A stretch of 64,000 bases of DNA from Mizuhopecten yessoensis (taxonomy: Eukaryota): NCBI RefSeq assembly GCF_002113885.1, contig NW_018406026.1, positions 11,859-75,858 on the forward strand, given 5' to 3'. The notes under the pieces are model-generated. The model had not been told where the DNA came from and ran no database searches. It saw only the letters and a list, made by a program, of their open reading frames with translations. Position numbers and translations under genes: made by a program. This document shows positions 1-31,800 of this stretch, one piece after another; the first letter of the stretch is position 1; every line of letters starts with the position of its first letter.

Positions 1-3000
1 TTTGGAGTATGTAGAGGGGACAGAAATAGTTAACAGTAAAAGTATGACGAGCAGGACAGAAAAAGTATACAGTTAGGGTATGCGGAGCGGGACAGAAATA
101 GTATACAGTTAGAGTGTGCAGAGCGGGACAGAAACAGTATACAGTTAGAGTATGACGAGCGGGACAGAAATAGTATACTCTTAGAGTATGACGAGCGGGA
201 CATGAATAGTATACAGTTAGAGTATGTGGAACGGGTCAGAAATAGTATACAGTTAGAGTATGTAGAGGGGACATAAATAGTTAACAGTAAGAGTATGACG
301 AGCGGGACGGAAATAGTATACAGTTAGGGAATGAGGAGCGGGACATAAATAGTAAACGGTGTGAGTATGACGAGCGGGCCAGAAATAGTATACAGTTAGA
401 GTATGTAGAGGGGACATAAATAGTTAACAGTAAGAGTATGACGAGCGGGAGGGAAATAGTATACAGTTAGAGTATGACGAGCGGGACAGAAATAGTATAC
501 AGTTAAAGTATGTGGAGCCGGATAGAAAAAGTATACAGTTAGAGTAAGACGAGCGGGAGAGAAATAGTATACAGTTAGAGTATGACGAGCGGGACAGAAA
601 TAGTATACAGTTAAAGTATGTGGAGCCGGATAGAAAAAGTATACAGTTAGAGTAAGACGAGCGGGAGAGAAATAGTATACAGTTAGAGTATGTAGAGGGG
701 ACAGAAATAGTAAACAGTAAGAGTATGTAGAGCGGGGCAGAAAAAGTATACAGTTAGAGTATGAGGAGGGGACGGAAATAGTATACAGTTAGAGTATGAC
801 GAGCGGGAAAGAAATAGTATACAGTTAGAGTTTGCAGAGAGGGACAGAAATAGTATACAGTTAGAGTATGAAGCGCTGGACAGAAATAGTATACAGTTAG
901 AGTATGTAGAGGGGACAGAAATAGTATACAGTTAGAGTATGTAGAGCGGGGCAGAAATAGTAAATAGTTAAAGTATGTGGAGCCGGACAAAAATAGTATA
1001 CAGTTAGAGTATGACGAGCGGGACAGAAATAGTATACAGTTAGAGTTTGCAGAGAGGGACAGAAATAGTATACAGTTAGAGTATGTAGAGCGGGACAGAC
1101 ATAGTTAACAGTTAGAGTATGACGAGCGGGACAGAAATAATATACAGTTAGAGTATGTGGAACGGTACAGAAATAGTATACAGTTAGAGTATTACGAGCG
1201 GGACAGAAATAGTATACAGTAAGAGTATGAAGAGTATGACGAGCGGGACAGAAATAGTATACGGTTAGGGTATGAGGAGCGGGACATAAATAGTAAACAG
1301 TTAGAGTATGTAGAGCGGGACAGAAATAGTATACAGTTAGAGTATGTGGAACGGGACAGAAATAGTATACAGTTAGATTATGAAGAGGGGACAAAAATAG
1401 TTAACAGTAAGAGTATGACGAGCGGGACAGAAAAAGTTTACAGTTAGGGTATGAGGAACAGGGAACAGAAATAGTATACAGTTAAAGCATGAGGAGCCGG
1501 ACAAAAATAAAATACAGTTAGAGCATGACGAGCGGGACAGAAATAGTTAACAGTTAGAGTATGACGAGCGAGACAGAATTAGTATACACTTAGTGTATGA
1601 CGAGTGGGATAGGAATAGTATACAGTTAGAGTATGCACAGGGAACAGAAATAGTATACAGTTAAAGTATGTGGAGCCGGACAGAAATAGTATACAGTTAG
1701 GGTATAAGGAGCGGGACATAAATAGTAAACAGTTAGAGTATGTAGGGCGGGCCAGAAATAGTATACAGTTAGAGTAGGTAGAGGGGACAGAAATAGTATA
1801 AAGTTAGAGTATGTGGAACGGGACAGACATTGTATACAGTTAGATTATGAAGAGGGGACAAAAATAGATAACCGTAAGAGTATGACGAGCGGGACAGAAC
1901 TAGTTAACAGTAAGTGTATGACGAGCAGGACAGAAATAGTATGCAGTTAGAGTATGACGAGCGGGACAGAAAGAGTTAACAGTAAGAGTATGACGAGCAG
2001 GACAGAAACAGTATACAGTTAGGGTATGAGGAGCGGGACAGAAATAGTAAACAGTTAGAGTATGTGGAGCGGGATACAAATAGTATACAGTAAGAGTATG
2101 AGGAGGGGCCGGAAATAGTATACAGTTAGAGTTTGTAGAGGGGACAGAAATAGTAAACAGTAAGAGGATGTAGAGCGGGACAGAAATAGTTAACAGTTAG
2201 AGTATGACGAGCAGGACAGAAACAGTATTAGTATACAGTTAGAGTATGTAGAGGGGACAAAAATAGTATACAGTTAGAGTATGATTAATAGTTAGAGTAT
2301 GTGGAGCGGGACAGATATAGTTAACAGTTAGAGTATGAAGAGCGGGACAGAAATAGTAAACAGTAAGAATATGACGAGCGGGACAGAAATAGTTAACAGT
2401 AAGAGTATGATGAGATAATATACAGTAAGAGTATGTAGAGGGGACAGAAATAGTATACAGTTACAGTATGTGGAGCCGGACAAAAATAGTATACAGTTAG
2501 AGTATGAGGAGGGGACGGAAATAGTGTACAGTTAGAGTATGACGAGCAGGACAGAAATAGTATGCAGTTAGAGTATGTGGAGCGGGACTGAAATAGTATA
2601 CAGTTAGAGTATGGGGAGCGGGACAGAAATAGTATACAATTAGAGTATGCAGAGCGGGACAGAAATAGTATACAATTAGAGTATGCAGAGCGGGACAGAA
2701 ATAGTATACACTAAGAGTATGAAGAGCAGGATAGAAATAGTTAACAGTTAGAGTATGACGAGCAGGACAGAAATAGTATGCAGTTAGAGTATGACGAGCG
2801 GGACAGAAAGAGTTAACAGTAAGAGTATGACGAGCGGGACAGAAACAGTATACAGTTAGGGTATGAGGAGCGGGACATAAATAGTAAACAGTTAGAGTAT
2901 GAAGAGCGGGACAGAAATAGTAAACAGTTAGAGTATGTAGGGCGGGCCAGAAATAGTATACAGTTAGAGTATGAACAGGGAACAGAAATAGTATACAGTT

Positions 3001-5079
3001 AAAGTATGTGGAGGGGACAGAAATAGTATACAGTGAAAGTATGTGGAGCCGGACATAAATAGTATACAGTTAGAGTATGGGGAGCGGGACAGAAATAGTA
3101 TACATTTAGAGTATGACGAGCGGGACAGAACTAATTAACAGTAAGAGTATGACGAGCACAGAAAGAGTTAACAGTAAGAGTATGACGAGCAGGACAGAAA
3201 CAGTATTAGTATACAGTTAGAGTATGTAGAGGGAACAGAAATAGTTAACAGTTAGAGTATGTGGAGCGGGGTGGAACGGGACAGAAATAGTATACAGATG
3301 TAGAGGGGACAGAAATAGTAAACAGTAAGAGTATGACGAGCGGGAGAGAAATAGTATACAGTTAGGGTATGAGGATCGGGACAGAAATAGTATACAGTTA
3401 GATTATGATTAGCGGGACAGAAATAGTATACAGTAAGAGTATGAGGAGGGGCCGGAAATAGTATACAGTTAGAGTATGTTTAGCGGGCCAGAAATAGTAT
3501 ACAGTTAGAGTTTGTAGAGGGGACAGAAATAGTAAACAGTAAGAGTATGTGTTAGAGTATGACGAGCGGGACAGAAAAAGTTTACAGTTAGGGTATGAGG
3601 AACAGGGAACAGAAATAGTATACAGTTTAAGCATGAGGAGCCGGACTAAAATAGAATACAGTTAGAGAATGATTAGCGGGACAGAAATAGTATACAGTTA
3701 CAGTATGTGGAGCCGGTCAAAAATAGTATACAGTTAGAGTATGGGGAGCGGGACAGAAATAGTATACATTTAGAGTATGTGGAGCGGGACAGAAATAGTA
3801 TACAGTTAGAGTATGTACAGGGAACAGAAATAGTATACAGTTAAAGCATGAGGAGCCGGACTAAAATAGTATACAGTTAGAGTATGATTAGCGGGACAGA
3901 AATAGTATACAGTTAGAGTATGTGGAGCGGGACAGAAATATGAGGAGCCGGACTAAAATAGTATACAGTTAGAGTATGATTAATAGTTAGAGTATGTGGA
4001 GCGGGACAGAAATAGTATGCAGTTAGAGTATGACGAGCGGGACAGAAATAGTATACATTTAGAGTATGTGGAGCGGGACAGAAATAGTAAACAGTAAGAG
4101 TATGTAGAGCGGGACAGAAATAGTATACAGTTAGAGTATGACGAGCTGGACAGAAATAATATACAGTTAGAGAATGACGAGCTGGACAGAAATTATATAC
4201 AATTAGAGTATTTAGAGCGGGACAGAAATAGTAAACAGTTTGAGCATGTAGAGGGGACAGAAATAGTATACAGTTAGAGTATGTGGAGGGGACAGAAATA
4301 GTATACAGTAAGAGTATGACGAGCTTGACAGAAATAGTTAACAGTAAGAATATGACGAGCGGGACAGAAATAGTATACAGTTAGAGTATGACGAGCGGGA
4401 CAGAAATAGTATACAGTTAGAGTATGTAGAGGGGACAGAAATAGTTACCAGTAAGAGTATGACGAGCGGGACAGATATAGTATACAGTTAGGGTATGAGG
4501 AGCGGGACATAAATAATATACAGTTAGAGTATGACGAGCGGGACAGAAATAGTATACACTTAGAGTATGACGAGCGGGACAGAAATAGTATACAATTAGA
4601 GTATGACGAGCGGGACAGAAATAGTATATAGTTAGAGTATGTGGAACGGGACAGAAATAGTATACAGTTAGAGTATGTAGAGCGGGACAGAAATAGTAAA
4701 CAGTTAGAGTATGACGAGCGGGACAGAAGCAGTATACAGTTAGATTATGTAGAGGGGACAGAAATAGTATACAGTTAGAGTATGTAGAGGGGACAGAAAT
4801 AGTTAACAGTAAGAGTATGACGAGCGGGACAGAAATAGTATACACTTAGAGTATGACGAGCGGGACCGAAATAGTATACAGTTAGAGTATGTAGAGGGGA
4901 CAGAAATAGTATACAGTTAGAGTATGTAGAGCGGGGCAGAAATAGTTAACAGTTAGAGTATGTGGATCGGAATAGGAATAGTATACAGTTAGAGTATGTA
5001 GAGCGGGACAGAAATAGTATACAGTTAGAGTATGACAAGCGGGACAGAAATAGTATACAGTTAGAGTATGACGAGCGGG
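1..5079. repeat. 36-bp minisatellite array (consensus GACGAGCGGGACAGAAATAGTATACAGTTAGAGTAT), about 140 degenerate copies, open at window start
   Basis: Directly visible tandem unit. The 12-aa periodicity (HTLTVYYFCPAR) of the minus-strand ORFs confirms the 36-bp period. Lies downstream of the donor at 6597, so probably intronic in the minus-strand receptor gene. Confidence 0.97.
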
Positions 5080-6597
5080 TATTTATCAACAGGACTCGGC
5101 GTCCATGCGATTCTCTGAAACCGGCTTCATCCGATCATAATCTTATTATCCTAATAATTATAGACTATTTTTCAATGATTTGAGACCGTGCAAGTCTTAC
5201 TTTAAGAAGAATACCATAAAACAGAATATGTCTGTATTGCGAGGTCGTTCTACGCATTATTTGATAAGCTGAAACTCGGCATATATTTCAATTATGCATA
5301 TATAACACTTGTTGAAAATGAGGTTATATAACTATCCTGTAATTATATCGATAAGCATGTATTGTCATGTCAATTACAACATATGAATACAAACCTCTTT
5401 GAAAATAAACGTATATATCAAAGGACTATTATCTAATTAAAATCAATCTTAACACCATCGCACGTAATCCATGTAATTGAGAGAACAAGGGGCTTACAGA
5501 TAGTAACACGTATGCGGGTTTATGTGGTTTGGACTTTTTTTTATCTTTACACAACATTGCTACTTTCAAACCATTAAATGCTCATCAATAAATACGTGTT
5601 CTGTCATTGCTCTATTAAACACAACACGAAAGATTTCGTGTAATCGAGATTACGCTTTTATGCCAATTAAGTACAACAAAGAAAAACCATTTCCGTTTTG
5701 GTCTCTCACCTGCTACATTTGAAAAGTGAGTCTCACCAAACAGGGGTTACAAACAAGATTCGCTTGTTGAAAGTCTAATCGTAGCGTGTAAGTGGTGAAT
5801 TGTTCAAAAAAGTCATATAAGTATATATATATATAAAAACCCAAAAATCAGTAAAAATATAAGTAAAAGAAGCCTTTACAGTACCTCATGTTTTGACTTT
5901 GTTTTGGTGTTTTCGAGCTTGTATAAAAAATAACGTTTTAATATAAATTATAAATCGTACAAATGAGTGTTTTTTATCGATGATTCATGAGCTTAATGAT
6001 ACATGATCATGAAGGTCACTTTAAAGTATTTATTTTCATATTTCGTTTTTTGATTATTAAAAGTGTGAAAACAAAATCATCATGTCTTACAAATGAGTTG
6101 AAAATGATATCAAAATTGATGTATCTTAAAATCAATAAATCCATACAAACATGTGAATAAACATTTTCACTGGGGCTATTCAACAATTTGAAATTCTCCC
6201 ACACTAAAATGTAATGTAGAAGACACAGGACTATCACAACTCATCCGTAATATCATAATGAAATATGTACCAATGCACTGCATTTCAACTATATACCTCA
6301 CCACATTCAGATAAGATGGCATTCATGGAACTATTTTTTTAATAATAGTACGTGTAATTGAATTTTATGAAATAATCAGACTTAAAATATGGTAAATTCA
6401 AGTATTGAACTGCTTTCTTTTGAGATTCATGAGCAATATGAATGCCAAAAAGCAGTTCAGTGCTTAAAATCAGCTTAGCGGACCTCACGATATCCCCGAT
6501 TCATCTTTACACACTTTACTGTGAACATTGTTCTATTCCTCGTGAACCAGCAGTGGTATGCGAATCTAGATCAAAAATGGTCGTTCTATCCACTTAC

Positions 6598-6844
6598 CTG
6601 AAGCCCTGGAGTTACTACATACGCTGCCGTAGTGACGTTCTATTTTGGTAATTTTGTAGGAGCTGTTGAGGATATCCCTATTGACCCTTTCAATGGCAAT
6701 ATCTATAGCTGGTCCTACTCTCTCCACGTCGTAAGGTGTGTTTGCGTCGTAGATCATGGCTACGCCGACGTTAAATTCCCTCACAGAACCAGTTGTCGGG
6801 CGTGTGTAAAACAAATTAAATAACACGATGTAAGCTTCCCACAT
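6598..6844 (-). CDS. First coding exon of a receptor guanylyl cyclase / atrial natriuretic peptide receptor-like protein (ANF-receptor ligand-binding domain start); gene continues left of the window
   Basis: Signal-like MWEAYIVLFNLFY, then FNVGVAM..PYDVERVGPAIDIAIERVNRDILNSSYKITKIERHYGSVCSNSRASG, matching the ANF_receptor N-terminal pattern (PAI.IA.E.VN). Ends at a strong phase-1 donor CAG|GTAAGT (6598/6597). Alternative ATG at 6856. Confidence 0.82.
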
Positions 6845-7799
6845 CTTCAAAACCATCCTCCTACACGTTACAGATATTCGCAACTCTTTTTACGTAAACG
6901 TTATGTTTGAAATGCTACTACAGAAGTTGCCATAACCGTCGATCTATTCGCAAGTAAACTCATGATCATAGCATAAAAACTGTTACTGTTAGCACAAGTC
7001 TGATGTATCTTACTAAGTATGATATGACCAGTATGGCCTCATCCCGGTCCTTTCACCACCCTTATGAAACCATTTATCTATTATGGGTTTCATTTAGCTC
7101 TGGTGACGAACATCGTTGTCAGTATACTAATTAGACGCTTTGTCCGGGCTTGTCAGCAGCTCCCGGTTATGAGCGGCTTCACATTAACGCGATCTTGATT
7201 GGTTTGTGTCGTCGTCACCAATGTGTTATTATTACAGGCTATTCAGATGCTGTGGACGTTAGTACAGGTAATCGATGATGTAAGTGTCTGTAAAAGCCAG
7301 TACATTTTCTTAGATAGGTAAAGGTACTCGAAAACAACCAGATTTATATCAAAAGTAGCAGTAATGGATGCATCCATCAAATCTTAAACTCCTATTACAG
7401 ATCAATTTGTTATGACGTCATAATGTGCGACATTTCTACATCCTTATATGTTCATGTTTATGATATGATATGCAACTCTTATAAAGCGCTCTATATGATT
7501 CCTGATATTACTCATAAATGTCTACAGAATATTTAATATACATGACATTATGACGTAATTGTCAGAAATATGAAACAGACAAGTTCAATGACGTCACAAG
7601 TGATATGATCTACAAAATATATAACTATTTTATAATAAAGCCCTATACAATGACGGATGATAAATGTTTATATTAGACAGATATCTAGAAAGCGGAAGAA
7701 GGAATGTGAAATTTCAACCCCAATATCCTTTGTGTGATGAGCATGTGATGCACGTGCTTTCACCTAGTGACGCTTTTACTATGTTATCTTTCACCGTTA

Positions 7800-9760: not shown

Positions 9761-10426
9761 TAATATGATTGAGTGAGGCACAATCCTGCATACGGAACTG
9801 CCATATTTGCCCAAAAGATAACAAAAGATTAAAAGATAAAGGTACGTTTTAGCAAGTGCAAGTAGGTTAAAATAGTAGGTATTCCCACGAAGGTGAAGTA
9901 AGTCATTGCCGCTGTAACTTGTTACTGATATTTTTAATAGACGCTAAAATGTTATACACTTACAACATTACATACTTAGTCAAAAATCTACAATGTTAAT
10001 AAAATATATGAAAACAAACCTTTTCTCGGCTATTTACAGTAATTTAAAGCTTTCCTGGGTAGAATATTATACTCTAGACAGACTTTAGTTGCATTCCTAG
10101 TGGTCGTGGTTGTTGACGCGACATTGATTTAAGTGGATGCTCTGAGCATTATATCACCAGGTATTACATGAAAGCTATATGTAGGCTACCATCACACTAT
10201 TACATAATGTGGGATCAGCAATGATATACTTCTTTAAGTTTCCTACAAGTTACAACTATGATAAATGTGTATGTTATCCTCAACCTGTCATGCGGTGTTG
10301 TAGTTGTATTTGGTCTAGCATGATGACTCGAGGGATCTGTAAATCTGGAGAATGTCTAAACAAAATTGATGTTTTTCGCTTGTTTGGTATCTTTTCAACA
10401 GTCTGAAGATATAACGAACAATTGTC

Positions 10427-11786
10427 TTAATGTCCTTCTACAAAACGCATGATGGCTTCTGTTGTATTGACACTGAACCCCACCACCTGGAGCATAAATG
10501 GATTTTTTTGATCCTCTACTGTTACGTCACTGCTGGCAAAGTTGACGATAACAAGTCGAGTTGTGCCGACGCCGAAGTGAAACCTTGAAAATGTCTGTTT
10601 GAATTTCTCAGCTGGGGAGGATAAAAGCACTATAATGGCGTCGAATGAATCCAGTGCCTCTTCCACATGTTGTACAAGAACCGATAGTGACTCATTTACT
10701 GCAATTAAATTGTTCGTGCAAGCCAAAGCGTCTGTACTAGGGAATTCCAGCTTAATCTTTTCCCCGGAAGTGTACGTGACAATTTCCGAGTCTCTGTGTG
10801 TTGCTCTTGCAATTATAGTCGCCATTGTAGCTATGGCGTCTCCGATAGTAACTGATTTTTTTTCCTCAAGTTTAGAGTCTAGTTCCTTGCCTACCCAATG
10901 CACCAAAGAATATTTTTTGTCTGTTGGTTTTACATTACGGACACAAAGTTCAAAAGAGTGTGCCAGTGTCTTCTTGACGTTTTCGTCATTTGTTTCCTTC
11001 ATTGCAAGTACAACTGCGAATGGGTTCACGTTTGCATTTTGTAGCTGTTCCACATCTCCCAGTCTCTCAAGAATTGTCTTCTGGTCATCTAATTGGTCTA
11101 TCTTCGAAATGTTCTGAATGACCAGATCAAGAGGAATTTGGTTCAGCAAAACTTCCCAAACAAGTGTGGACCTCATGAGTGCCGCAGACATTTGCGAGGT
11201 TTCCAGCCTATATTTCCTTATGATATCGATTTTCCCCTGAACTTCCATGTTTCCAGTACACTGACGTGTGTTGTTAACCGCCTCGAGGTATTGGAGGATG
11301 TCCTGCCATTGTTTGGCTTGGTCGCGGTCAATTGGCGATGGTAATTTCTTTGATTCGTTTAGACCTTTAGTGACATATCTCAGGATCAACATGATGAATG
11401 GGGAGTCTGGTTTCACATGCGACAACCTGGCAACATCTTTATGGGTCCACTGACCATTTTTTTGTACTTTCGTAACGCCTTCTGCTAGTTCCATGGGCCT
11501 GTCGCTGAAGCTGTTGTACCAGTCAGAAACGGCTCGGCGTTGTGCCCTACCCCACCCTGTTCCCCCGCTCACCATTTCACAAAACATGACGAAAGTAAGT
11601 AAATCCGAGGGTTCGGGACATACTGCTTGAAGAGCGGAATAAGCGGCTTTCTTCGTGCTGGATTCCGTTGATCGGGCACACATTGCTAGTGCGTATATCG
11701 CGGTTTGTCGCTGACATCCTCTTCCCGTTAATTTAGCCCTCTTTATGATCTCAACAACTTCAGGACCGTGATCATTGGAAATCAAA
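10427..11786 (-). CDS. RO60: Ro60/TROVE2-like protein, large terminal coding exon (TROVE HEAT-repeat ring plus degenerate vWA domain)
   Basis: Motifs match Ro60: YALAMCAR, TKKAAY, LLTFV, GWGRAQRRAVSDWYN (Ro60 WGRALRKAIADWYN), WTHKDVARLSHVKP (WSHKDLLRLSHLKP), VWEVLL, NVKPTDKKY, DQKNPFMLQVVGFS (DPDDRGMLDMCGFD). Acceptor tttcAG|T at 11787/11786 is phase-compatible with the upstream exon. Stop TAA at 10427. The symbol marks family only; probably a divergent paralog. Confidence 0.9.
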
Positions 11787-12168
11787 CTGAAATCAGTATA
11801 ATAAACCATATTAATTAAATCATACAAGTAGGTTTCTTTCCTAACGTCAATGTATCAGACCATCGCATTTTTTTGTACTTATCGGCGATGGTCTAAGGGA
11901 GACAACCTTTACATGCGTGATCACATGGTTGTGATAAGACACATGAAAAGGGCAAATTTTATATAAAGGGACATGAGCATCTCCTAATGGCAAAATCGTT
12001 GTCAGTTTATAATAAGCAACACTTAGATAAAAACACTGACAAGCCATTTATGTTTTATATTGAAAAGGGTGGCACATATTTAGGGTCTGACAAACCTTAC
12101 AAACCATAACCATAACTGTACAGTTGCACCTGTTCGGAATAATTCCCAGAGGATTGTGAACAGTATAC

Positions 12169-12170
<2 letters not shown>

Positions 12171-12201
<31 letters not shown>
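12171..12201 (+). repeat. (GATA)n microsatellite in the Ro60-like intron
   Basis: gatagatagatagata... about 7-8 units visible. Confidence 0.95.
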
Positions 12202-12202
<1 letters not shown>

Positions 12203-12561
12203 CTAATCAACCGTGTTATGCCAACTTCAACGTATAATTGATGTGTCTTGATTTTTCAAATATGACCTGTTTACAAGGATTATATTTAGGTGACTTAAAT
12301 TATTTTTCAATAACTCCATTTTATATATTTTTTTTCAGTAGCGTAGACAACAGGCTATTTTTCAAACGATAATCTACAGGGCTTCTGTACTGTATGTTTT
12401 AAAAATGTCATTTCAACCACTCCTCTTATATGTTGCGCTATCCACTTTTGAACAAAAGTTAGTTTTATTGTTCATATCAACATGGTCATAGGTTGTTCGC
12501 CAATAAATCAATAAAAATGTCCTGAAAATTCCAGTGGAAATCTTTCTTATGGATATACCTG

Positions 12562-12802
12562 GGCCCAGTTGTTCAAAGGGTGGTTAGCTTAATCACTGTC
12601 TAGCGACATTTTCCAACATATAATAATTTCGTCAATATACAAGGTAAAAACTCGTCATTTTGTATGTAAATTAACTCCACTAAATAGCTGATATCTGTAA
12701 AGTTATAACTAATTCAATGGTTGTGTTTTAAAGATACACAAAAAATAAAATTTGCGCTAACTAATCACTGTTTAAGCTAATCACATTTTGAACAACTGGG
12801 CC
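12562..12802. mobile_element. 241-bp MITE, PIF/Harbinger-like, in the Ro60-like intron
   Basis: Terminal inverted repeats GGCCCAGTTGTTCAAA / TTTGAACAACTGGGCC, extended by subterminal ttagcttaa / ttaagctaa. 3-bp CTG target-site duplication at 12559-12561 and 12803-12805. Confidence 0.85.
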
Positions 12803-13197
12803 CTGGTGTCATCAGGAATTTTATGGAACCTCAAACTGAAAAATTTCTCCGACATTACTTTCCATATGTATTTTTGTTTTGTTTAAAAATGCATCATGAT
12901 CCCCTTAAACCCAATAGATCTATATAATGGAAGTCAAGCTTAAATCGCTTGTTAAATAACACAAGACAATATTACTGGCGATGTCGGAGTACTGTTTGCC
13001 CTACACAATTATCATTAAATCTTTTGAATTATAATGATATATGCCAAATATGCAAATTCCGGAGGGTCAAACATGAAAACATGCATAGCGCAATTATATT
13101 ACAATGACCTCGTGAACAACGGAAGGGTTTTTAATCAACCGTGTTAGGAATGGGGAATAGGCCTATCACAACAAATAATGCAAGTTTGTATCATTAC

Positions 13198-13463
13198 CTG
13201 TCGATACATTTAACTTCCTTTCGAGTGAATTCTCTATCGGCTGATTCGTAAGCACCCTTTTCTGCGCCTAGGATGAGGAACCTATGGAGTCGCCATTTGT
13301 CGGATTTTATGTCCGGGATTAATACCCCTGCCTCCCGTAACGACATCTCCATCGAGGCATTTCTTCGTACGCTGGCCAGTGCTTGAAACCTTCCGGATCT
13401 TAAAGTGGCACGAGTTAAAGAAATCATTTCATCGGAGGAAGAACTAAGATCTGAGTCTGACAT
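13198..13463 (-). CDS. RO60: Ro60/TROVE2-like protein, first coding exon (joined CDS 1626 nt, 541 aa)
   Basis: SDKWRLHRFLILGAEKGAY matches Ro60 TDMNRLHRFLCFGSEGGTY. Donor AG|GTAATG at 13198/13197 (phase 2) joins 11786 to give ...CIDSLISND. ATG at 13463. An acceptor-like site at 13486/13485 suggests a further upstream exon. Confidence 0.85.
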
Positions 13464-14659
13464 GATACCGGCTGTAGTGGGTGACCTGCCGATTGTAAAA
13501 CAGAAAGTACACTTAGAGAATTCCACGAAGGCTAAAAATAGCTGTTGTTGTGTTACGTCACTAGGTCGAGATCGGTGCAATATTAATCTGTGCCCCCGGT
13601 AATATATGTCTGTAACGTCGTCTTTGTCCTATACACTTTGTCAGTAATGGAAAACGGAAACGGGGCAACACATATTTTACTTGAATTTGTCTTTGAAAGT
13701 TACAACTGAACATAATTCTCGCTGTTACATTAACCTTACATATAACATGTAAAGCCTGCAGGTTACACAATGTTTTTATTGTATAACTTCTTATATATCT
13801 GTATCATATATAACAAAACTAGCATTAAGTCACTGTCACAATAAGCATGATTTCTTAAGGTTCATGTAAACACTAATAATTGACCTTCAGGTCCCTTTAT
13901 TTCATGTTTAAATATTACATTTATTACAAGCTGTGCTGAATTGTCGTTTTCAATATTATAAATTATAAATTCAAACTCCCTATAGCCATGATTGAACGTT
14001 TGCCACGCACTCAATAAATAGTGTTATTTGAAATATAAATGAGTGACTCGTGAATATTTTGCCATTATTTGAGGGGAAAATTAGAACTGATAACCTATTC
14101 ATGTTTGAAAATTGAAACTTTGGCAAAAATAAGATATTATATACAGTGAGGTACTCCTATGAAGTAAATTATGTTTAAACATCCATAGATGGATTTTGGT
14201 TAAATCGAAAGTCATCGTGTTGTCGAATGGAGGCCGCCATTTTTCTTTTTTTAGCTGTCAAAAAATGGTGATTATTTCCGTCACAATCACAAGCGATCGG
14301 TGCGTTCATAAAACACCAAACGACACGAAATAGACTGCATTGACATCGAATGAACCATAAATAACTAGCACATGTCGTAACCAGGTCTTTTGTCCATATT
14401 CAGACCAACTTTCTTCCTCTTGGTATGATTTTCGTACCGGACGACATGGCGATATCGCTCCGCAGTTAGTTTACAAAAATGACAATGTTTCCTGTCATAG
14501 TTATCAAAACAAGAGCATAATTCTCTAAATAATAAAATACTTTTGATTCCGAATTGAATTACAAAAATGTAAGAGTATTACTACAGAAAAAGAAATCATA
14601 ATATCTAAGATCGGACTGTTTGTGCGGCGTCACTTCCGGCAATGTGCATCAGACGTCAA

Positions 14660-23665: not shown

Positions 23666-25077
23666 TATTTTACCATCCCCCGTTTCACCTCATTATCTAT
23701 TTTCCAAACCCCTACATTTATTTGCACACATGATAAACCCATATATTGTATCGATCCGGAGATACTTGAAAGGCATCTCACATAATAAAGGCTCAACCAC
23801 CATGAGCTCTGACAGTGGAATCAAGTATAAGATGAGGGTAGTAATTGTTAACTGGCAAATATTATCAATGACGGCTTTAAGCTCCCTCACCGATATGTTG
23901 CTAAATAGTGTCTATTTATCTATTTATTTATTTATTTATTTTCCTTTAAAGTTTGGCCTATTATCCTTCTTTTCCATTAATGTCTACACTTTCATTGATG
24001 TGACCTTCTTAACAATCATTGTGTCGTCGATACATTGTCGTCACTATATGGACTAAAACCAGTGTAATTGTAAAACAGCACAAATTTCAGCTATGAAACC
24101 AAGATAGATACAATGTGACTCGGTAACCATACTATGATAAACAAAACACCACAGCTATCGCAATAACGCTTTCTGTTTGTAAAGACTACAATTTTTAAAA
24201 AGTGAAAGCAGAAGAATATCCATTAATGCTGTTGAACTGTGTTTTCTTCAAAGCCAACGACTAGTAGTCACTTACCATCTAATGTAGCTCTCAACTTGTC
24301 ATTTCTGTAAGCATTTTATTGAGTTTAGTGGTTTTCTTGAGTGCATCGTGTGTCTCTGTAAAATGTAGAAAAACGCTTTCCTTATGCATTGCACAAAATA
24401 GTCAAGTCTTAATAGGGGCTGCGTACGGACTTTGGATAATACCACACATAGCATAACTGATAGCTATTTAATAAACACTAACCAATCAATACAAACGAAT
24501 TGAAAAATGCAATCGTATCGCGGTTAGAAACCGAGGAATCATTAACGTAGGACAATCGAAAACAACAGTGGTTACAACGACCGGGCAGGAAAGTGCTTCC
24601 CAGCCCAGGAAGTTCACTACAATGCGCTGTCGTTATGTAATCATCTGTAAAGTCAACATACATGGCAGGTTGTAGAGCAGCTCCTAAGACTCGGGGCTCT
24701 ACAACATGACCATCGGGGCTCTGGTTTTATCATATTTCTAAAAAAATATCTAGTTAGAACATCAAGTACTGTCAGCATTTTACAACATTACTACAGCAAA
24801 ATCTAAAATAAAGGGAATGTTTTGTTTTTAAAAAGTGAGATACAAAGATTTTTGTAGAGTTCCAAATATTATTAAATTCACAATGTGTTTTTTAAAACGA
24901 TAACTTATGTCCTATACACAATGTTAATGCCACACGTAGAAACCATTGGTAAGAATCTGGGGTGGGTATGTGTTTAGATTCCAGGGACATACAATGTTGA
25001 AATATAACGGGAAACGCCCCTCTTTCCGCCATTTTGATATAAATATATAAAACTTTATTTATTTTACAACCATTATG

Positions 25078-25271
25078 AAACAAGTTATTTTAACTTATAT
25101 CAATCACTGTTGATGGCCCGGATGTTAGCGCACAGGGGTTTTATTGTGGGAGAAAATCGGAAAATCGGAGAAATCCACGTGGTCGGGCAGGTGACCTCAT
25201 ACCGTTTCACGTCCGATCGGGGAATCGAACCCCGGCAATTGCAAGTGCGCTATCCACTGCGCCAACCGACC
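25078..25271 (-). mobile_element. tRNA-derived SINE with a V-domain-like central region
   Basis: Minus strand reads GGTCGGTTGGCGCAGTGG (A box)...GGTTCGATTCC (B box), then gtggatttctccgattttccgattttctcccaca, resembling the V-SINE domain GTGGGTTTTCTCCGGGTACTCCGGTTTCCTCCCACA. No complete cloverleaf. Confidence 0.78.
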
Positions 25272-25869
25272 ACGACCAGCCATTTTGATAGAGGGGATAA
25301 CCAGTGACACACTTCTTTGTGTATGATATGTAGCGTTTGTTGTTTTTGACCCCTCGAACAAATAAGTAAACAGTCTAGTGACAAAGACTAAGATGCTGCT
25401 TTGCGATGTACGAAATATCTACAGATAGTGATTAATTTATCAAAACTGAATAAAAATCAGTAATAAATTGACAATACATTTGAATAACCTTCGGACTATT
25501 GTGTGTTGGTTTATTCACTCAGAAAAGCTATTTGTGACTGTAGCATATGTCTCGCAAATAAGCGGGTATTGTCATCTATGAGTCGCATTCTATGTCAACT
25601 GGGTATATCTCCAGTTATGACCCTCGTATACAAAAGGGAGATAAATGCTCCCGTTCCAATCATGTCTATGATTTGAACATTAGCCAGGTAAAAGAGCTTT
25701 ATAATACACGAGGCGATCAATAAACACTCTGTCATTTTCTTTGACTACCAGCATTAGCACTCATATTTCTGCAGTTTTCGTATAAATAGACTGAATCCCT
25801 TTTTTTTGGCCTTGTTTTATGAAATAATTGCAGAGGATTTGTTTATCTGTCCGGGACAACTCTGTCATA

Positions 25870-28800
25870 ATGGTGAAATTCATAAGTGCGTTGGTGTCGG
25901 TTACTTTCACCATTGAAACCCTGACCGCTTCTACAGGTAAGTCATCTTAACATTCTTTTAACGAATAGTTTACTACATCAACTTTTATGACCAAATTGCA
26001 TTGAGACACATGTCTTGAATATTATGTGAGATTTGCATTTTTTTAACTGTTTTATTGCGTTTTAATATTTATGGTGTCTTAATATTTACATAAAACTGTA
26101 TGATGGTATACTGCACAAATATATACACAACTTAATTAAGAAATCACATTTTAAATGTTGTAATGTGAAGTTAGTTTTTTAAAGAAAGGCTTAATATTGT
26201 TGATAAACATCTGTATGACGTCTTAATGATAACAACAAACTGTGTGACATTATAATACTGGATAAACACCTGTATGACGTCTTAATGTTTACAAACAACT
26301 GTGTGACATTATAATACTGGATAAACTCATGTATGACGTCTTCATGTATACAAATAACTGTGCGACATTATATTACTGGATAAACACCTGTATGACGTCT
26401 TAAGGTTTACAAACAACTGTGTGACATTATAATACTGGATAAACATCTGTATGACGTCTTAATGTTTACAAACAACTGTGTGACTTTATAATACTGGATA
26501 AACACCTGTATGACGTCTTAATGTAAACAAACAACTGTTTGACATTATAATACTGGATAAACACCTGTATGACGTCTTAATGTTTACAAACAGCTGTGTG
26601 ACATTATAATACTGGATAAACACCTGTACGACGTCTTAATGTTTACAAACAACTGTGTGACATTATAATACTGGATAAACATCTGTATGACGTCTTAATG
26701 TAAACAAACAACTGCATGACATTATAATACTGGATAAACACCGCTATGACGTCTTAATGTTTACAAATAAGTGTGTGACATTATAAGAGAGAGGAGATTC
26801 AAATTGTTTCATTTACGGCAACAATAAAATATTAACAATAATATTTAAAGCACAGCAATTGCTTAAAGCATGACACGTTGAATTTAATGTGAACTATTCA
26901 GACTGGGTATCAACAGTTTCATTAACTCCGACTCCTTAACTTCCCTCTTTATCACATCAGATGAATGCATTTGGTAAATAGGGAACACTTTGAAGTTATT
27001 GTGAGCACAGTTATGAATAATTTTGTTCACTTGTAAAAATATAAGGTCATCATGGAGTGTTTGTTGCTTGTGAAGATTCATTCTTTGACGTAGTTCACGC
27101 CCAGTTTGGCCAATATAAAATACCAAACATTTAACACAAACTATAGCATATATAACATTCTTCGACTTACAATTCATACTAGATCGTAGTACGGTACAGT
27201 GAATTTAAATCCATTTTTGAAAACAAAAGTAGAACATTCAATAATTATTTTACATGTTCCACATCTGGGCGAATTACATTTAGACACATTAGGTTCAGCT
27301 TGATTAGTTTCAAACTTGGAAAAACTCAATAGCCTTTTGAGATTTTTGGGTTGTCTTTTACTATTGATAATTCTATGTTTAGCTAAAACATTTTTCATAC
27401 GCACGCTAGTTCTCTGCAAGTCATCAATTTTGGTTTTTACAATAGGGTACATAGCAAAATTATGTGGATTGTATGTAGATACAAAAGAAATAATTCCTTG
27501 GTCATCGTTGGCTTCTACACAGGATGTAAAAGGTCCCTTCTATATAGCTCTATTTACACCACTAAGAATAATCTCGTCCGGATAATGCTGCGACTTCAGG
27601 AAAAACATTAGTTAGGTGAGACAAATAAATAAGATGACGTACTGATGTACACAGTACATTTCTAAAACATATCACGTATTTTGAATCGATTAGAACAGTG
27701 GTATCATATTTCAAAATCTTCATTTCCTATATATTTAAGTGACCAGACAGGAGAAATTAAGGTTGCCGGCTTAATACTATCTATGGACGATGTTACCAGC
27801 TACACATTGGTACACGCTGACACTATTATGCTACCTGAAGACAATGTAGAAGGTTACAAGGATATCTAACATTAAGGTAGAATTTAAAGAGAACTTTTTA
27901 ACGAAGAAAACGTCAGATCATGCACTTTAAACAGCCACATAAAGAGAGGCTGAACTCCGATTTTCAATACTGTAATATGTTTATCGATCTTGCGAACTTG
28001 TCGAAAATATCTTGGAATATTGTTTGAAAACACTGATTTGATACATGATATTCCCCGACTCCGTACTAGCGGAATCCGCGTGACGTGCCGTAAGTGCCCA
28101 TTTACCGAAAAGTGTATATGCTGGCAAAATGTCTTGTAGCTGTATTGAATACGGTATTTAAATACTTAATGCGTTTCATGTTAATGCAGTTATCTCAGCA
28201 ATGGAAACGACAGGTCAGATTGTCGCCACAAATGGTTACTTGTTGTATCAAAGTACGATTAGAAAGTTATACATGTATTTCAGTGCCTTGACACCTGAGA
28301 TGTTTTTTGAACCGCCTGTCATATCGACCATTTTTGTATGATTTCATATTTTATTTTTTTGTTTCCGTTGGACAAAGCCCCTTGGCTCATACGTAGCCAC
28401 GAGACATACATATAGCCGTTTATAGTCTGCAGCACCTATTATTATGTAACGCTTAACATAAAGCCGTATTAATCTATGACCAATGCACACGGTTCCGGTG
28501 TCCAGTCGATGCTCGAACAATCGTTAACGTTCAGATATAGCCCATGCCATTGTTTGATCCTTGCTATTGTTAGTGGTATCAACTTGAAAGCTTCAGGAGA
28601 AACATTTATATCAGCTTTCAGCATGTTTTCTAATCCATAGTCTACCAACTGACATTACCAACAATAAGAAATGATGTATCGAATTTGGAAAAACATTATT
28701 TAAACTAACTTTAAATAGCATGTAAAAGTGATACAGAATACATGTATTTTGATTATTTTAAAAGCGTTTGTACGGCTTCCTTTTTGTGGTCGTGTTACCT

Positions 28801-31800
28801 CGGTTCCTCTTTAGTATCGAGATTGAATTCCATTTGTCTTTAGAATTACAATTATGGCTTTTTGATTGTTTTATTTTATTTCACTAACTGACAATGCTTA
28901 ATATTTTGCACGTACCGACAGCGCATACAGGAAAGTTGAGATAAGAGTGAATAAAATGGAACGTCAAAAAATCAGAAAGTTGATCAAAACAATTGTTGGG
29001 CGTTCCATTTGTCAATGCATACGGTTGCTTTGATGTTTTGCCGATGATACATTCATGCATTCATTTTGTTAACTACGTTTCAGTCTTAACACGAGTCGAA
29101 AACCTGTTGCTTGTCTACGAGAATACCAGTACCAACATTATTGAGTACTGGAACATGAATGAAACTGATAATAACCCGGATGATGACAAGCACACCATGC
29201 CTATCTACAAACTCATCAGGGGAGGTAACTTCAGAAGCAGCAAAGTGGACCACTGGGACACCAACCCTCCAAACGAGGTCGTTCAATGCAAATTGATATG
29301 CTTGTTTATATCATTAACGTTTGGTATTTTGAAGGATTCTAAACACAAAATAATCATAACATGATTATAATTATATTGCCATTATGATAATATAACTCAA
29401 TTTTAATCTAAAATGCTTAATCTTTTCATTTGACAACCAACAATGATTTGACATGTTATGTAGCAATGCTTCCTACGTGATGTCTTTCCGTTCTTTTTTG
29501 TTTTGTATTTTGTCTTTGTCCTTACGAGTTAACGATATGTGTTTTGCATGTCTTGTATTTTCTTCGTTTGTAACCTGCTCTGTACAAAACCACTATTATT
29601 AACGTACAAAATATAGTATCACTGATTCAGAGTGAAAAGGAAACCTGCCCAAACAATGTCGTGAACAGAATTTTGGCTGGCTGCTCGTTACTACAGCGTC
29701 AAATGACGCAAAAATATTTGGAACTTTTCTTAAGTATTATTCCTTCCCTTCTTATCCTTTTTGTTTCCTGAACGTGTTAATGTTTTGTGAATGATAACCA
29801 GGTTGCTGTTATGTTTTTCAACAACATCGGAGACCTTCATTTCTGGATGGTGTTTAACACACGTAACGCTTCCAGGGATCTGGCCCAGTGGATGAAGGTA
29901 GATCGGCTTCTCGGGTCCCTCATCATGAATATGTACCAGATGACCCCGTTATGGAGGTGAGTCATGGTCGCTGTATTGAAACCCCGATGTGACAACACCT
30001 TTAACGTTTCTTATAAATACAGTATCCCAAAAATGAATTACACCACGCCGACATAGCTATTTTGTTCTTCAAATGCTCATCAATGGTACTTGGAGCCAAA
30101 CAGGTGGAAATACATATCATTCTAAACTATTGTTGAAACAGTTGGGGAAGGTTGCGTAAAATCCATTAATTATATGTTTCCATTTAGAAATTGAAGTCAA
30201 ACTAATAATTGTTAAGTTCTCAACTCAAAATATATCGATTTGGCTATAACGGTTGGAAAACCTCGGAAACCTTAAGTACCTGTGCCTATTATGTCTCACA
30301 CGAGTGTATTTGATGATGGGTTCTCCGTGCATGACAGTTCAGGTGACTGTAGTCAGCTTTTTCCATCTTATTGCTACACGACCCTTCTGTGGTTCTGAAC
30401 AATGTATGTTCTTGATGATATGAATTACGTGTAATATTTCGTATACATCACCAAAAAATATCTACCCATTCCCTATGTAATCGTTTACATTATATACATG
30501 TGTATAGGGTAGTTTGTAATTTACAACTTGTATACATACTTATCAAGCTAAGTGGTCAACCTAATTAAGTATGTTTGAACTGCGATTTTTTTTTTATATT
30601 TCATCAAAAACAGCGAGGTAACCAGGAGTCCTGTTTACCTTGTCAGGGTCTGATCACTCGTCTGTTGGTAATATTGATTAGTCAGTCTACACGTCCTATT
30701 TCTTGGTAATATTGATTAGTCAGTCTACTCGTCCTATTTCTTGGTTATATTGATTAGTCAGTGTACACGTCCTATTTCTTGGTTATATTAATTAGTCATT
30801 CTACACGTCCTATTTCTTGGTTATATTAATTAATCAGTCTACACGTCCTATTTCTTGGTTATATTAAGTAGTCAGTCTACACGTCCTATTTCTTGGTTAT
30901 ATTTATTAGTCAGTCTACACGTCCTATTTCTTGGTAATATTAATCAGTCAGTCTACACGTCCTATTTCTTGGTAATATTAATCAGTCAGTCTACACGTCC
31001 TATTTCTTGGTAATATTAATCAGTCAGTCTACACGTCCTATTTCTTGGTAATATTGATTAGTCAGTCCACACGTCCTATTTCTTGGTTATATTGATTAGT
31101 CAGTCTTCACGTCCTATTTCTTGGTAATATTAATTAGTCAGTGTACACGTCCTATTTCTTGGTTATATTAATTAGTCATTCTACACGTCCTATTTCTTGG
31201 TAATATTGATTAGTCAGTCTACTCGTCCTATTTCTTGGTTATATTGATTAGTCAGTCTACACGGCCTATTTCTTGGTTATATTGATTAGTCAGCCTACAC
31301 GTCCTATTTCTTGGTTATATTAATTAGTCACTCTACACGTCCTATTTTTTGGTTATATTGATTAGTCAGTCTACACGTCCTCTTTCTTGGTTATATTAAT
31401 CAGTCAGTCTACACGTCCTATTTCTTGGTAATATTGATTAGTCAGTCTACTCGTCCTATTTCTTGGTTATATTGATTAGTCAGTGTACACGTCCTATTTC
31501 TTGGTTATATTAATTAGTCATTCTACACGTCCTATTTCTTGGTTATATTAATTAGTCAGCCTACACGTCCTTTTGAATTAGTCAGTCTACACGTCCTATT
31601 TAATTAGTCAGGCTACACCTCCTATTTCTTGGTAATATTGATTAGTCAGTCTACACGTCCTACTTCTTGGTAATATTAATTAGTCAGTCTACACGTCCTA
31701 TTTCTCGGTTATATTGATTAGTCAGTCTACACGTCCTATTTCTTGGTTATATTTATTAGTCAGTCTACACGTCCTATTTCTTGGTAATATTGATTAGTCA

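Follow-up and report, generated by a model that had tools for sequence, protein, structure and literature searches.

A scallop-lineage paralog of Ro60 that lacks the canonical MIDAS motif and keeps a conserved N-terminal TROVE half

A 64,000-nt stretch of the Mizuhopecten yessoensis genome (GCF_002113885.1, contig NW_018406026.1), hereafter the window, within which all positions are given unless another contig is named, carries on its minus strand a two-exon gene (13463-13198 joined to 11786-10427 across a GT..AG intron) with a Ro60-type product. Sequence comparisons indicate that this gene is the M. yessoensis member of a scallop-lineage Ro60 family and a DNA-level duplicate of the canonical two-exon Ro60 gene. 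The reading that we favour, at slightly better than even odds (probability about 0.55), is that the paralog would form a specialised Ro ribonucleoprotein (RNP) with altered RNA and partner specificity, alongside canonical Ro60. The conservation of Ro60 extends from phages and bacteria to humans, and the protein is one of the major autoantigens. A search of the literature on scallop or mollusc Ro60 paralogs found nothing relevant.

The coding sequence comprises 266 + 1360 nt (1626 nt, giving 541 codons and a stop). Exon 1 ends in the donor GACAG/GTAATG and exon 2 follows a pyrimidine-rich acceptor, TTTCAG/T (slashes mark exon boundaries), with the junction codon AG/T reading Ser in phase 2. An earlier note on this DNA had described an intact, spliced 541-residue Ro60-type reading frame, with three N-terminal motifs kept (RLHRFLILGAEKGAY, WGRAQRRAVSDWY and WTHKDVARLSHVKP) and several others degenerate (LVHWVGKEL, IIVLLSSP, ETSQ, IQNISK and VNPF..MKETNDE). 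All of these strings are read in the open reading frames (ORFs), and the family assignment agrees with those ORFs. Homology searches were run per exon (window:13200-13463:- and window:10430-11785:-, separately). Exon 2 matched the Pfam TROVE family well above its gathering cut-off (3.5e-16, 59.9 bits, cut-off 23) and passed marginally for vWA_Ro60 (7.9e-07, 29.6 bits, cut-off 27.7); the orthologous proteins P0002-P0004 carry no precomputed PF25045 match. Its closest relatives among solved structures were human Ro60 (9nen, 1.4e-44) and Xenopus Ro (1yvp, 1.2e-43).

The structure modelling proposed in the earlier note recovered the expected ring and vWA fold. The AlphaFold 2 (AF2) model of exon 2, with a predicted local distance difference test (pLDDT) score of 88.9 and a predicted template modelling (TM) score, pTM, of 0.83, shows helical repeats followed by a beta/alpha vWA domain. 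Foldseek returned only Ro60 or Rsr at ranks 1-10 for this model (E 7e-24 to 8e-18), the top TM scores being 0.80 for Deinococcus Rsr and 0.79 for apo human Ro60. The 44-row alignment used as input included canonical sequences, and therefore the model, from which the 89 exon-1 residues are absent, would by itself be unable to reveal a loss of fold. In the model, the paralog keeps the HEAT-repeat ring of Ro60 together with its vWA cap. The protein thus has the TROVE domain, the Ro60-type vWA domain and the ring and vWA fold of the Ro60/TROVE family, in architecture and fold resembling canonical metazoan Ro60 (RO60/TROVE2; 1YVP, 9NEN and the scallop protein P0013).

Within that shared architecture the residues have diverged, and over exon 2 the identity between the paralog and the scallop canonical protein is 36%. 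The reference for this comparison was a set of 95 canonical Ro60s, spanning molluscs, annelids, brachiopods, echinoderms, hemichordates, cnidarians, sponges and fish, in which 133 columns are at least 90% conserved. All five members of the paralog family (the M. yessoensis protein and the four orthologs described below) keep 51 of these columns, and 59 are changed in at least four of the five. The kept columns concentrate in the N-terminal half (F50, G54 and Y60; G152 to Y167, GxGWGRAxRxAxxxWY; T182 and K183; W190, H192, D194, R197, L198 and H200), and the equivalents of Xenopus K170 and H187 are kept as well. The motifs RFLxLGxExGxY and WGRAxRRAxxxWY are held in common with canonical Ro60, as are the K170 equivalent and, within W-H-D--RL-H-KP, the equivalent of H187. 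Invariance among the paralogs is near the canonical level at exon-2 residues 31-150 and lowest at 361-420; together with the column conservation, this profile bears out the proposal that the N-terminal TROVE part is conserved. According to a review, the H187S substitution abolishes Y RNA binding (PMC11277228).

The losses affect both the ring and the vWA domain. The R174 equivalent, which is Arg in 100% of the 95 canonical proteins, reads Asn, Ser, Asn, Asn and Val in the paralogs. The basic pair K170/R174 is thus incomplete, with the K170 equivalent kept and the R174 equivalent replaced; in work attributed to Fuchs et al. in 2006, these two residues are said to form a basic platform for the helices of misfolded RNA. 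The equivalents of R255/E256 (VREH), the R and L of RNLGK and the H of IHPF are also lost, with arginines going at RNLGK and ARIHPF (R298 and R333 of scallop canonical Ro60), and so is the N-terminal N..GG hairpin motif. Among 26 conserved basic columns, 16 remain basic and eight are lost (the R174 equivalent and seven others), and the net charge of the TROVE domain is +3 in the M. yessoensis paralog versus +12 in the canonical protein, with a range of 0 to +10 across the paralogs. Two loops present in canonical Ro60 are absent, one of 13 residues (GxGxxGKLxW) and one of 7 residues after NLGK, and three residues are inserted. These two ring deletions would fall roughly in the H15-H18 region, the helix mapping being approximate; in phage Ro60, H15-H18 is a mobile segment that sets the size of the cavity (PMC12135203).

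In the vWA domain the MIDAS, its metal ion-dependent adhesion site, is gone. The D, S and S of DxSxS (D391, S393 and S395 in scallop canonical Ro60) are each 99% conserved across the 95 close canonical Ro60s; the paralog has W, G and E at these positions, and the MIDAS Thr and Asp positions are likewise replaced in all five members. The conserved columns lost here comprise the MIDAS D, S, G, S and M, the T, D, E and T of TDxET, and further positions. Unlike canonical Ro60, then, the paralog has DxSxS, the MIDAS Thr and TDxET all replaced; the DxSxS...T...D signature of a canonical Ro60 is not found, and the residue at the H187 column is present, as a residue only. In 20 columns a new residue is shared as fixed by at least four of the five paralogs (for example F140L, L300I, E423H, F431Y and G491F), indicating new constraints and not relaxation alone.

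The earlier note had raised the matter of a separate canonical Ro60 in the same genome, and a TROVE search of the whole assembly found one on contig C5581. Its product, P0013 (555 residues), is the canonical ortholog of RO60, and its large exon has every motif intact (CLAVDVSGSMD, VFIVYTDSETH, LVREH, IRNLGKM and RIHPF...KGKLTW). The canonical gene has the same two-exon structure as the paralog (exon 1 at 600771-601001 and exon 2 at 608426-609862 of C5581), and a phase-2 intron lies at the homologous codon in both genes. The exon 1 boundary reads ATTGACAG/GTAAT in the canonical gene and ATCGACAG/GTAAT in the paralog, and the canonical acceptor is TTTCAG/A. Because the two genes share intron position and phase, the paralog arose by DNA duplication and not by retroposition; an origin as a retrocopy is ruled out by the common intron.

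The closest database protein is 98% identical and labelled '60 kDa SS-A/Ro ribonucleoprotein [Mizuhopecten yessoensis]'; it is encoded on a contig of 6967 bp. That locus (L003, G000:C82352:4476-6967) carries a second copy of exon 2 with the flanking sequence, matches the window colinearly at 98.96% across 2492 nt, non-coding parts included, and is most likely the other, uncollapsed haplotype of the paralog locus.

A word search found orthologs of the paralog in Ylistrum balloti (61% identity) and Pecten maximus (60%), and as two transcriptome proteins, P0004 (53%) and P0005 (46%); paralog proteins carry automatic annotation as Ro60 or Ro60-like. The MIDAS loss and both deletions are common to all five members. 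Synteny with the window is seen at the loci of both Ylistrum and Pecten: an ANF_receptor gene downstream in Ylistrum matches window 6593-6849, and upstream exons in Pecten match window 24397-29962. P0004 was recovered from the same run as the canonical protein P0015 (SRR19746222), and P0005 from the same run as canonical P0016 (SRR26445938); with the genome loci, these shared runs mean that at least four species have both genes. When 1.84 billion representatives were searched exhaustively with HMMER, only P0004 (515 bits) and P0005 (399 bits) came up as further members, the next match being a canonical mollusc Ro60 at 234 bits.

A maximum-likelihood tree (LG+C20+F+G4, 32 rows) unites all five paralogs with 100/100 support in a clade inside Pteriomorphia, sister (98/94) to the four canonical scallop proteins. 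The paralog accordingly sits in a sister clade and is not a one-to-one ortholog of RO60. Its stem branch measures 1.42 changes per site versus 0.21 for the canonical scallop stem (about seven times). Long-branch attraction would draw the paralogs off the short canonical scallop branch, and therefore the sister placement is conservative. An approximately unbiased (AU) test rejected the grouping of all canonical bivalve Ro60s without the paralogs (delta log-likelihood 26, p = 0.0006), for a group chosen after the tree was seen. As far as the sequences show, the duplication postdates the separation of scallops from oysters, mussels and arks and predates the divergence of the sampled scallop species. 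What the note had offered as a possible lineage-specific Ro60 subfamily is thus borne out, with five scallop members. Elsewhere in the bivalves, Potamilus streckersoni and Sinanodonta woodiana (P0019/P0029/P0045 and P0022/P0030) each have several canonical-looking Ro60 genes, some on one contig; these genes in freshwater mussels mean that Ro60 duplication recurs in bivalves.

Selection was measured by the Nei-Gojobori method (NG86) on exon-2 codons, with transcript coding sequences used for P0004 and P0005, as the ratio of non-synonymous to synonymous rates (dN/dS). The ratio for the paralog was 0.26 between M. yessoensis and Ylistrum (dS 1.04), 0.30 between M. yessoensis and Pecten and 0.20 between Ylistrum and Pecten, whereas canonical Ro60 gave 0.11 between M. 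yessoensis and Ylistrum (dS 0.96); with dS at ~1, near saturation, these values are approximate. By part, the paralog ratio was ~0.2 in the N-terminal TROVE half, 0.17-0.37 in the C-terminal half and 0.10-0.39 in the vWA domain. On these estimates purifying selection acts on every part of the paralog, with a relaxation of about two-fold when set against the canonical gene. An open frame is kept by both M. yessoensis alleles, by Ylistrum and by the two transcriptome species, at dS of ~1 or more.

The gene is also transcribed and spliced. Eighteen runs from 11 studies contain the gene stretch; the share of its words found was 0.52-0.55 in many of them, and the exons make up 1626/3037 = 0.54 of the 3037-nt query. 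Four runs were compared with the gene for junction and depth, with 12163-12212 skipped as a repeat. The joint between 11786 and 13198, proposed by the note as the place to look, occurred in assembled RNA contigs of X1 and X10, runs that belong to two different studies. It reads CT..AC on the plus strand, that is, GT..AG on the minus strand, at a contig depth of 170 in X1; in X10 a contig of 2108 nt covers 10043-11786 and, joined to it, 13198-13561. Depth was 0-10 in the intron bins (repeat excluded) versus 170-205 in the exons. In X1 five variants grouped at 10817-10867 are seen at roughly half the depth, and variant 10867, at least, matches the other haplotype (L003); both paralog alleles appear to be transcribed in this run. 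Reads were deep in X1 and X10 and near absent in X23 and X24, and the raw reads of two 2026 RNA runs gave little or no signal; expression is therefore uneven across runs. A young pseudogene, the alternative named in the earlier note, is rejected on the retained ORF, the dN/dS of 0.2-0.3 and the expression of spliced mRNA.

The duplication was followed by a burst of change, after which the paralog has stayed under purifying selection, with transcription and splicing continued. If the paralog is a specialised Ro RNP, RNA binding would be retained through the ring's strongly conserved N-terminal half, which holds WGRAxRRAxSDWY and the equivalents of K170 and, in W-HKD--RLSH-KP, of H187. MIDAS-dependent contacts would no longer be possible without the metal site, and the R174-equivalent arginine, seven more basic columns and two loops in the ring's C-terminal half have been given up along the way. 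Because of these losses of basic columns, of the R174 equivalent and of loops, the range of RNA substrates should differ from that of canonical misfolded-RNA surveillance. It is possible, and we put it forward tentatively, that the change went as far as a neofunctionalised Ro ring, in which the MIDAS-dependent partner and the misfolded-RNA platform were swapped for a new lineage-specific RNA or protein ligand, which the 20 paralog-specific fixed residues would serve together with the ring's remodelled C-terminal half. If that were true, the family would be a natural separation-of-function allele and could reveal the purpose of the Ro60 MIDAS.

Among a wider set of 255 Ro60-family proteins, which includes the 150 best representatives retrieved with the paralog as query, 194 have the full D-S-S-T-D and ~55 deviate in DxSxS, including some fish and many divergent proteins. 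The suggestion that MIDAS loss is atypical of canonical invertebrate Ro60 therefore stands, with the residues 99% kept in the 95 close proteins; any suggestion that it is unique does not, for similar deviations recur in divergent Ro60s elsewhere in the family. (The fish Ro60s P0007, P0008 and P0009, from Acipenser, Salminus and Brienomyrus, read NVSDS, DVSMC and DVCMS.) Several points weigh against the reading of a specialised Ro RNP. The role of the MIDAS in Ro60 has been called unclear (PMC12135203), so the effect of its loss is unpredictable. The approximate nature of the dN/dS values, noted above, belongs here too. The two M. yessoensis alleles differ by eight non-synonymous and two synonymous changes, six of the eight lying in the vWA domain, and a hand binomial calculation of 8:2 against a ratio of 0.26 gives p ~0.03. 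The Pecten maximus reference carries a +1 frameshift ~50 codons before the stop (L009:9500-9560, LR736847.1); past it the conserved C-terminus (RLVIIVNM...GIMRFVEGC) goes on in the other frame with no stops, and the frameshift could be either a recent lesion or an assembly error. The allele differences and the frameshift may signal weakening constraint in some lineages. Finally, an Rfam Y_RNA search of the whole genome gave no match, and its controls gave no signal either.

Some of these points would equally suit a subfunctionalised but mechanistically ordinary Ro60, in which the MIDAS and the loops are dispensable and the protein does the canonical job in a particular tissue, stage or stress. 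We consider this rather doubtful. The fold seen in the AF2 model and the Foldseek ranking, the retained H187 and K170 equivalents and WGRAxRRA motif, the unclear role of the MIDAS, its deviation in ~55 of 255 family proteins, some fish Ro60s among them, and the differences between runs, deep in X1 and X10 and near absent in X23 and X24, are all what such a protein would be expected to show. They do not sit easily with the change of 59 of the 133 near-universal columns, 20 of them fixed to a new residue, with the loss of eight of 26 conserved basic columns, among them the 100%-conserved R174 equivalent, or with a stem branch ~7 times that of the canonical clade.

The selective keeping of the N-terminal TROVE half, with MIDAS and platform residues lost, and the co-expression with the canonical gene in the same runs could instead point to a decoy or competitor. 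Such a protein would bind Y-type RNAs by the kept face, without the downstream partners or misfolded RNAs, and would titrate Y RNA or regulate the canonical Ro RNP. This seems unlikely to us: the vWA domain and the C-terminal TROVE half are themselves under purifying selection (0.1-0.39) and carry paralog-specific fixed residues, which suggests that those parts have a role of their own, and no scallop Y RNA was found in the genome Rfam search, whose controls, as said, were also silent. A duplicate in slow decay that lacks a function of its own, which the 8:2 allele differences, the Pecten frameshift and a vWA_Ro60 score just above cut-off might bring to mind, is highly improbable given an ORF open in both M. 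yessoensis alleles, Ylistrum and two transcriptome species at dS of ~1 or more, dN/dS of 0.2-0.3, spliced expression, and a conserved, stop-free downstream frame in Pecten itself.

A paralog kept by selection across several scallop genera without the MIDAS, the R174 equivalent and two ring loops, and with the Y-RNA-face residues remaining, could serve as a comparative tool: if the RNAs and partners of one scallop protein were set against those of the other, what each half of the molecule does could be told apart. Its value is limited by the occurrence of MIDAS deviations in other divergent Ro60s. Among more distant relatives, the paralog shares the ring and vWA architecture of Rsr (Deinococcus 2NVO; TM 0.80 for the model against 2nvo) and of phage phiRo60 (9L5Y). 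Unlike bacterial Rsr and phage phiRo60, which keep a metal-binding MIDAS, the scallop paralog is without the site; phiRo60 coordinates Ca2+ through D322, S324, T391 and D416 (PMC12135203). The other animal TROVE-domain protein, TEP1 (TROVE1), has the TROVE domain in common with the paralog, but the latter is nested within bivalve Ro60 and has no NACHT or WD40 part.

Table 1. Features of the M. yessoensis Ro60 paralog, in window positions.
Feature	Positions	Strand	Basis or remark
5' untranslated region (UTR), minimum extent	13464..13561	-	RNA contig of run X10 extends to 13561
Exon 1 coding, 88 codons + 2 bases, with RLHRFLILGAEKGAY motif	13198..13463	-	ORFs, sequence
Intron, phase 2, GT..AG, 1411 nt	11787..13197	-	11786->13198 joint in RNA contigs
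Exon 2 coding, 1 base + 452 codons + stop (10427-10429)	10427..11786	-	ORFs, sequence
TROVE Pfam match (HEAT-repeat ring), exon-2 residues 27-272	10970..11707	-	PF05731, 59.9 bits; same place in TROVE search of the assembly
Asn110 at Xenopus Ro R174 column	11456..11458	-	Column non-basic in 5/5 paralogs
His123 at Xenopus Ro H187 column	11417..11419	-	Invariant in paralogs and canonical proteins
Degenerate MIDAS, WVGKE in place of DxSxS	10883..10897	-	Alignment with canonical Ro60
vWA_Ro60 Pfam match, exon-2 residues 302-449	10439..10882	-	PF25045; beta/alpha fold in AF2 model
3' UTR, minimum extent	10043..10426	-	Contig 13 of run X10

As regards the start of translation, 13463 is the first ATG of the transcript, with A at -3, and no ATG precedes it from 13561 on; 13485-13544 is 82% identical to the Pecten maximus locus. 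The ortholog proteins begin at the equivalent of Met38 (13352 in the M. yessoensis gene). The Ser/Asp-rich residues 1-37 may be specific to M. yessoensis or may not be translated, and their status is uncertain.

Two other loci of the genome gave TROVE matches, and both leave the interpretation of the paralog unchanged. One, on contig C76705 (L006/L022, G000:C76705:394868-395401), is a third TROVE-like ORF of 177 residues, stop-terminated, that shares 32% identity with canonical Ro60 across the latter's N-terminal 160 residues. In the surrounding sequence searched, which extends downstream to ~9.5 kb from the ORF, tblastn detected no additional exons of Ro60 type, and this ORF is a fragment or a very divergent gene. 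The other (L002, L004 and L007, G000:C5569:2973031-2988544) is a multi-exon gene in which TROVE matches extend across more than 15 kb; its exons had no tblastn match to canonical (P0013) or paralog (P0004) Ro60, and it is probably a TEP1-type TROVE gene.

An Rfam scan of the window found no family above threshold. A satellite array with a 36-nt unit occupies 5-5079 (~140 copies, 80% matches), with a strong GC skew of +0.53, an AT skew, and spurious long minus-strand ORFs that contain repeated HTLTVYYFCPA. The intron of the paralog holds a (CTAT)n microsatellite at 12180-12215 and, at 12557-12807, an element of ~251 bp resembling a miniature inverted-repeat transposable element, whose terminal inverted repeats of 47 nt show 83% complementarity. 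Over this element the depth of RNA contigs reaches ~2600, far above that of the gene, and many reads continue into unlike sequence, from which it follows that the element is a multi-copy dispersed repeat.

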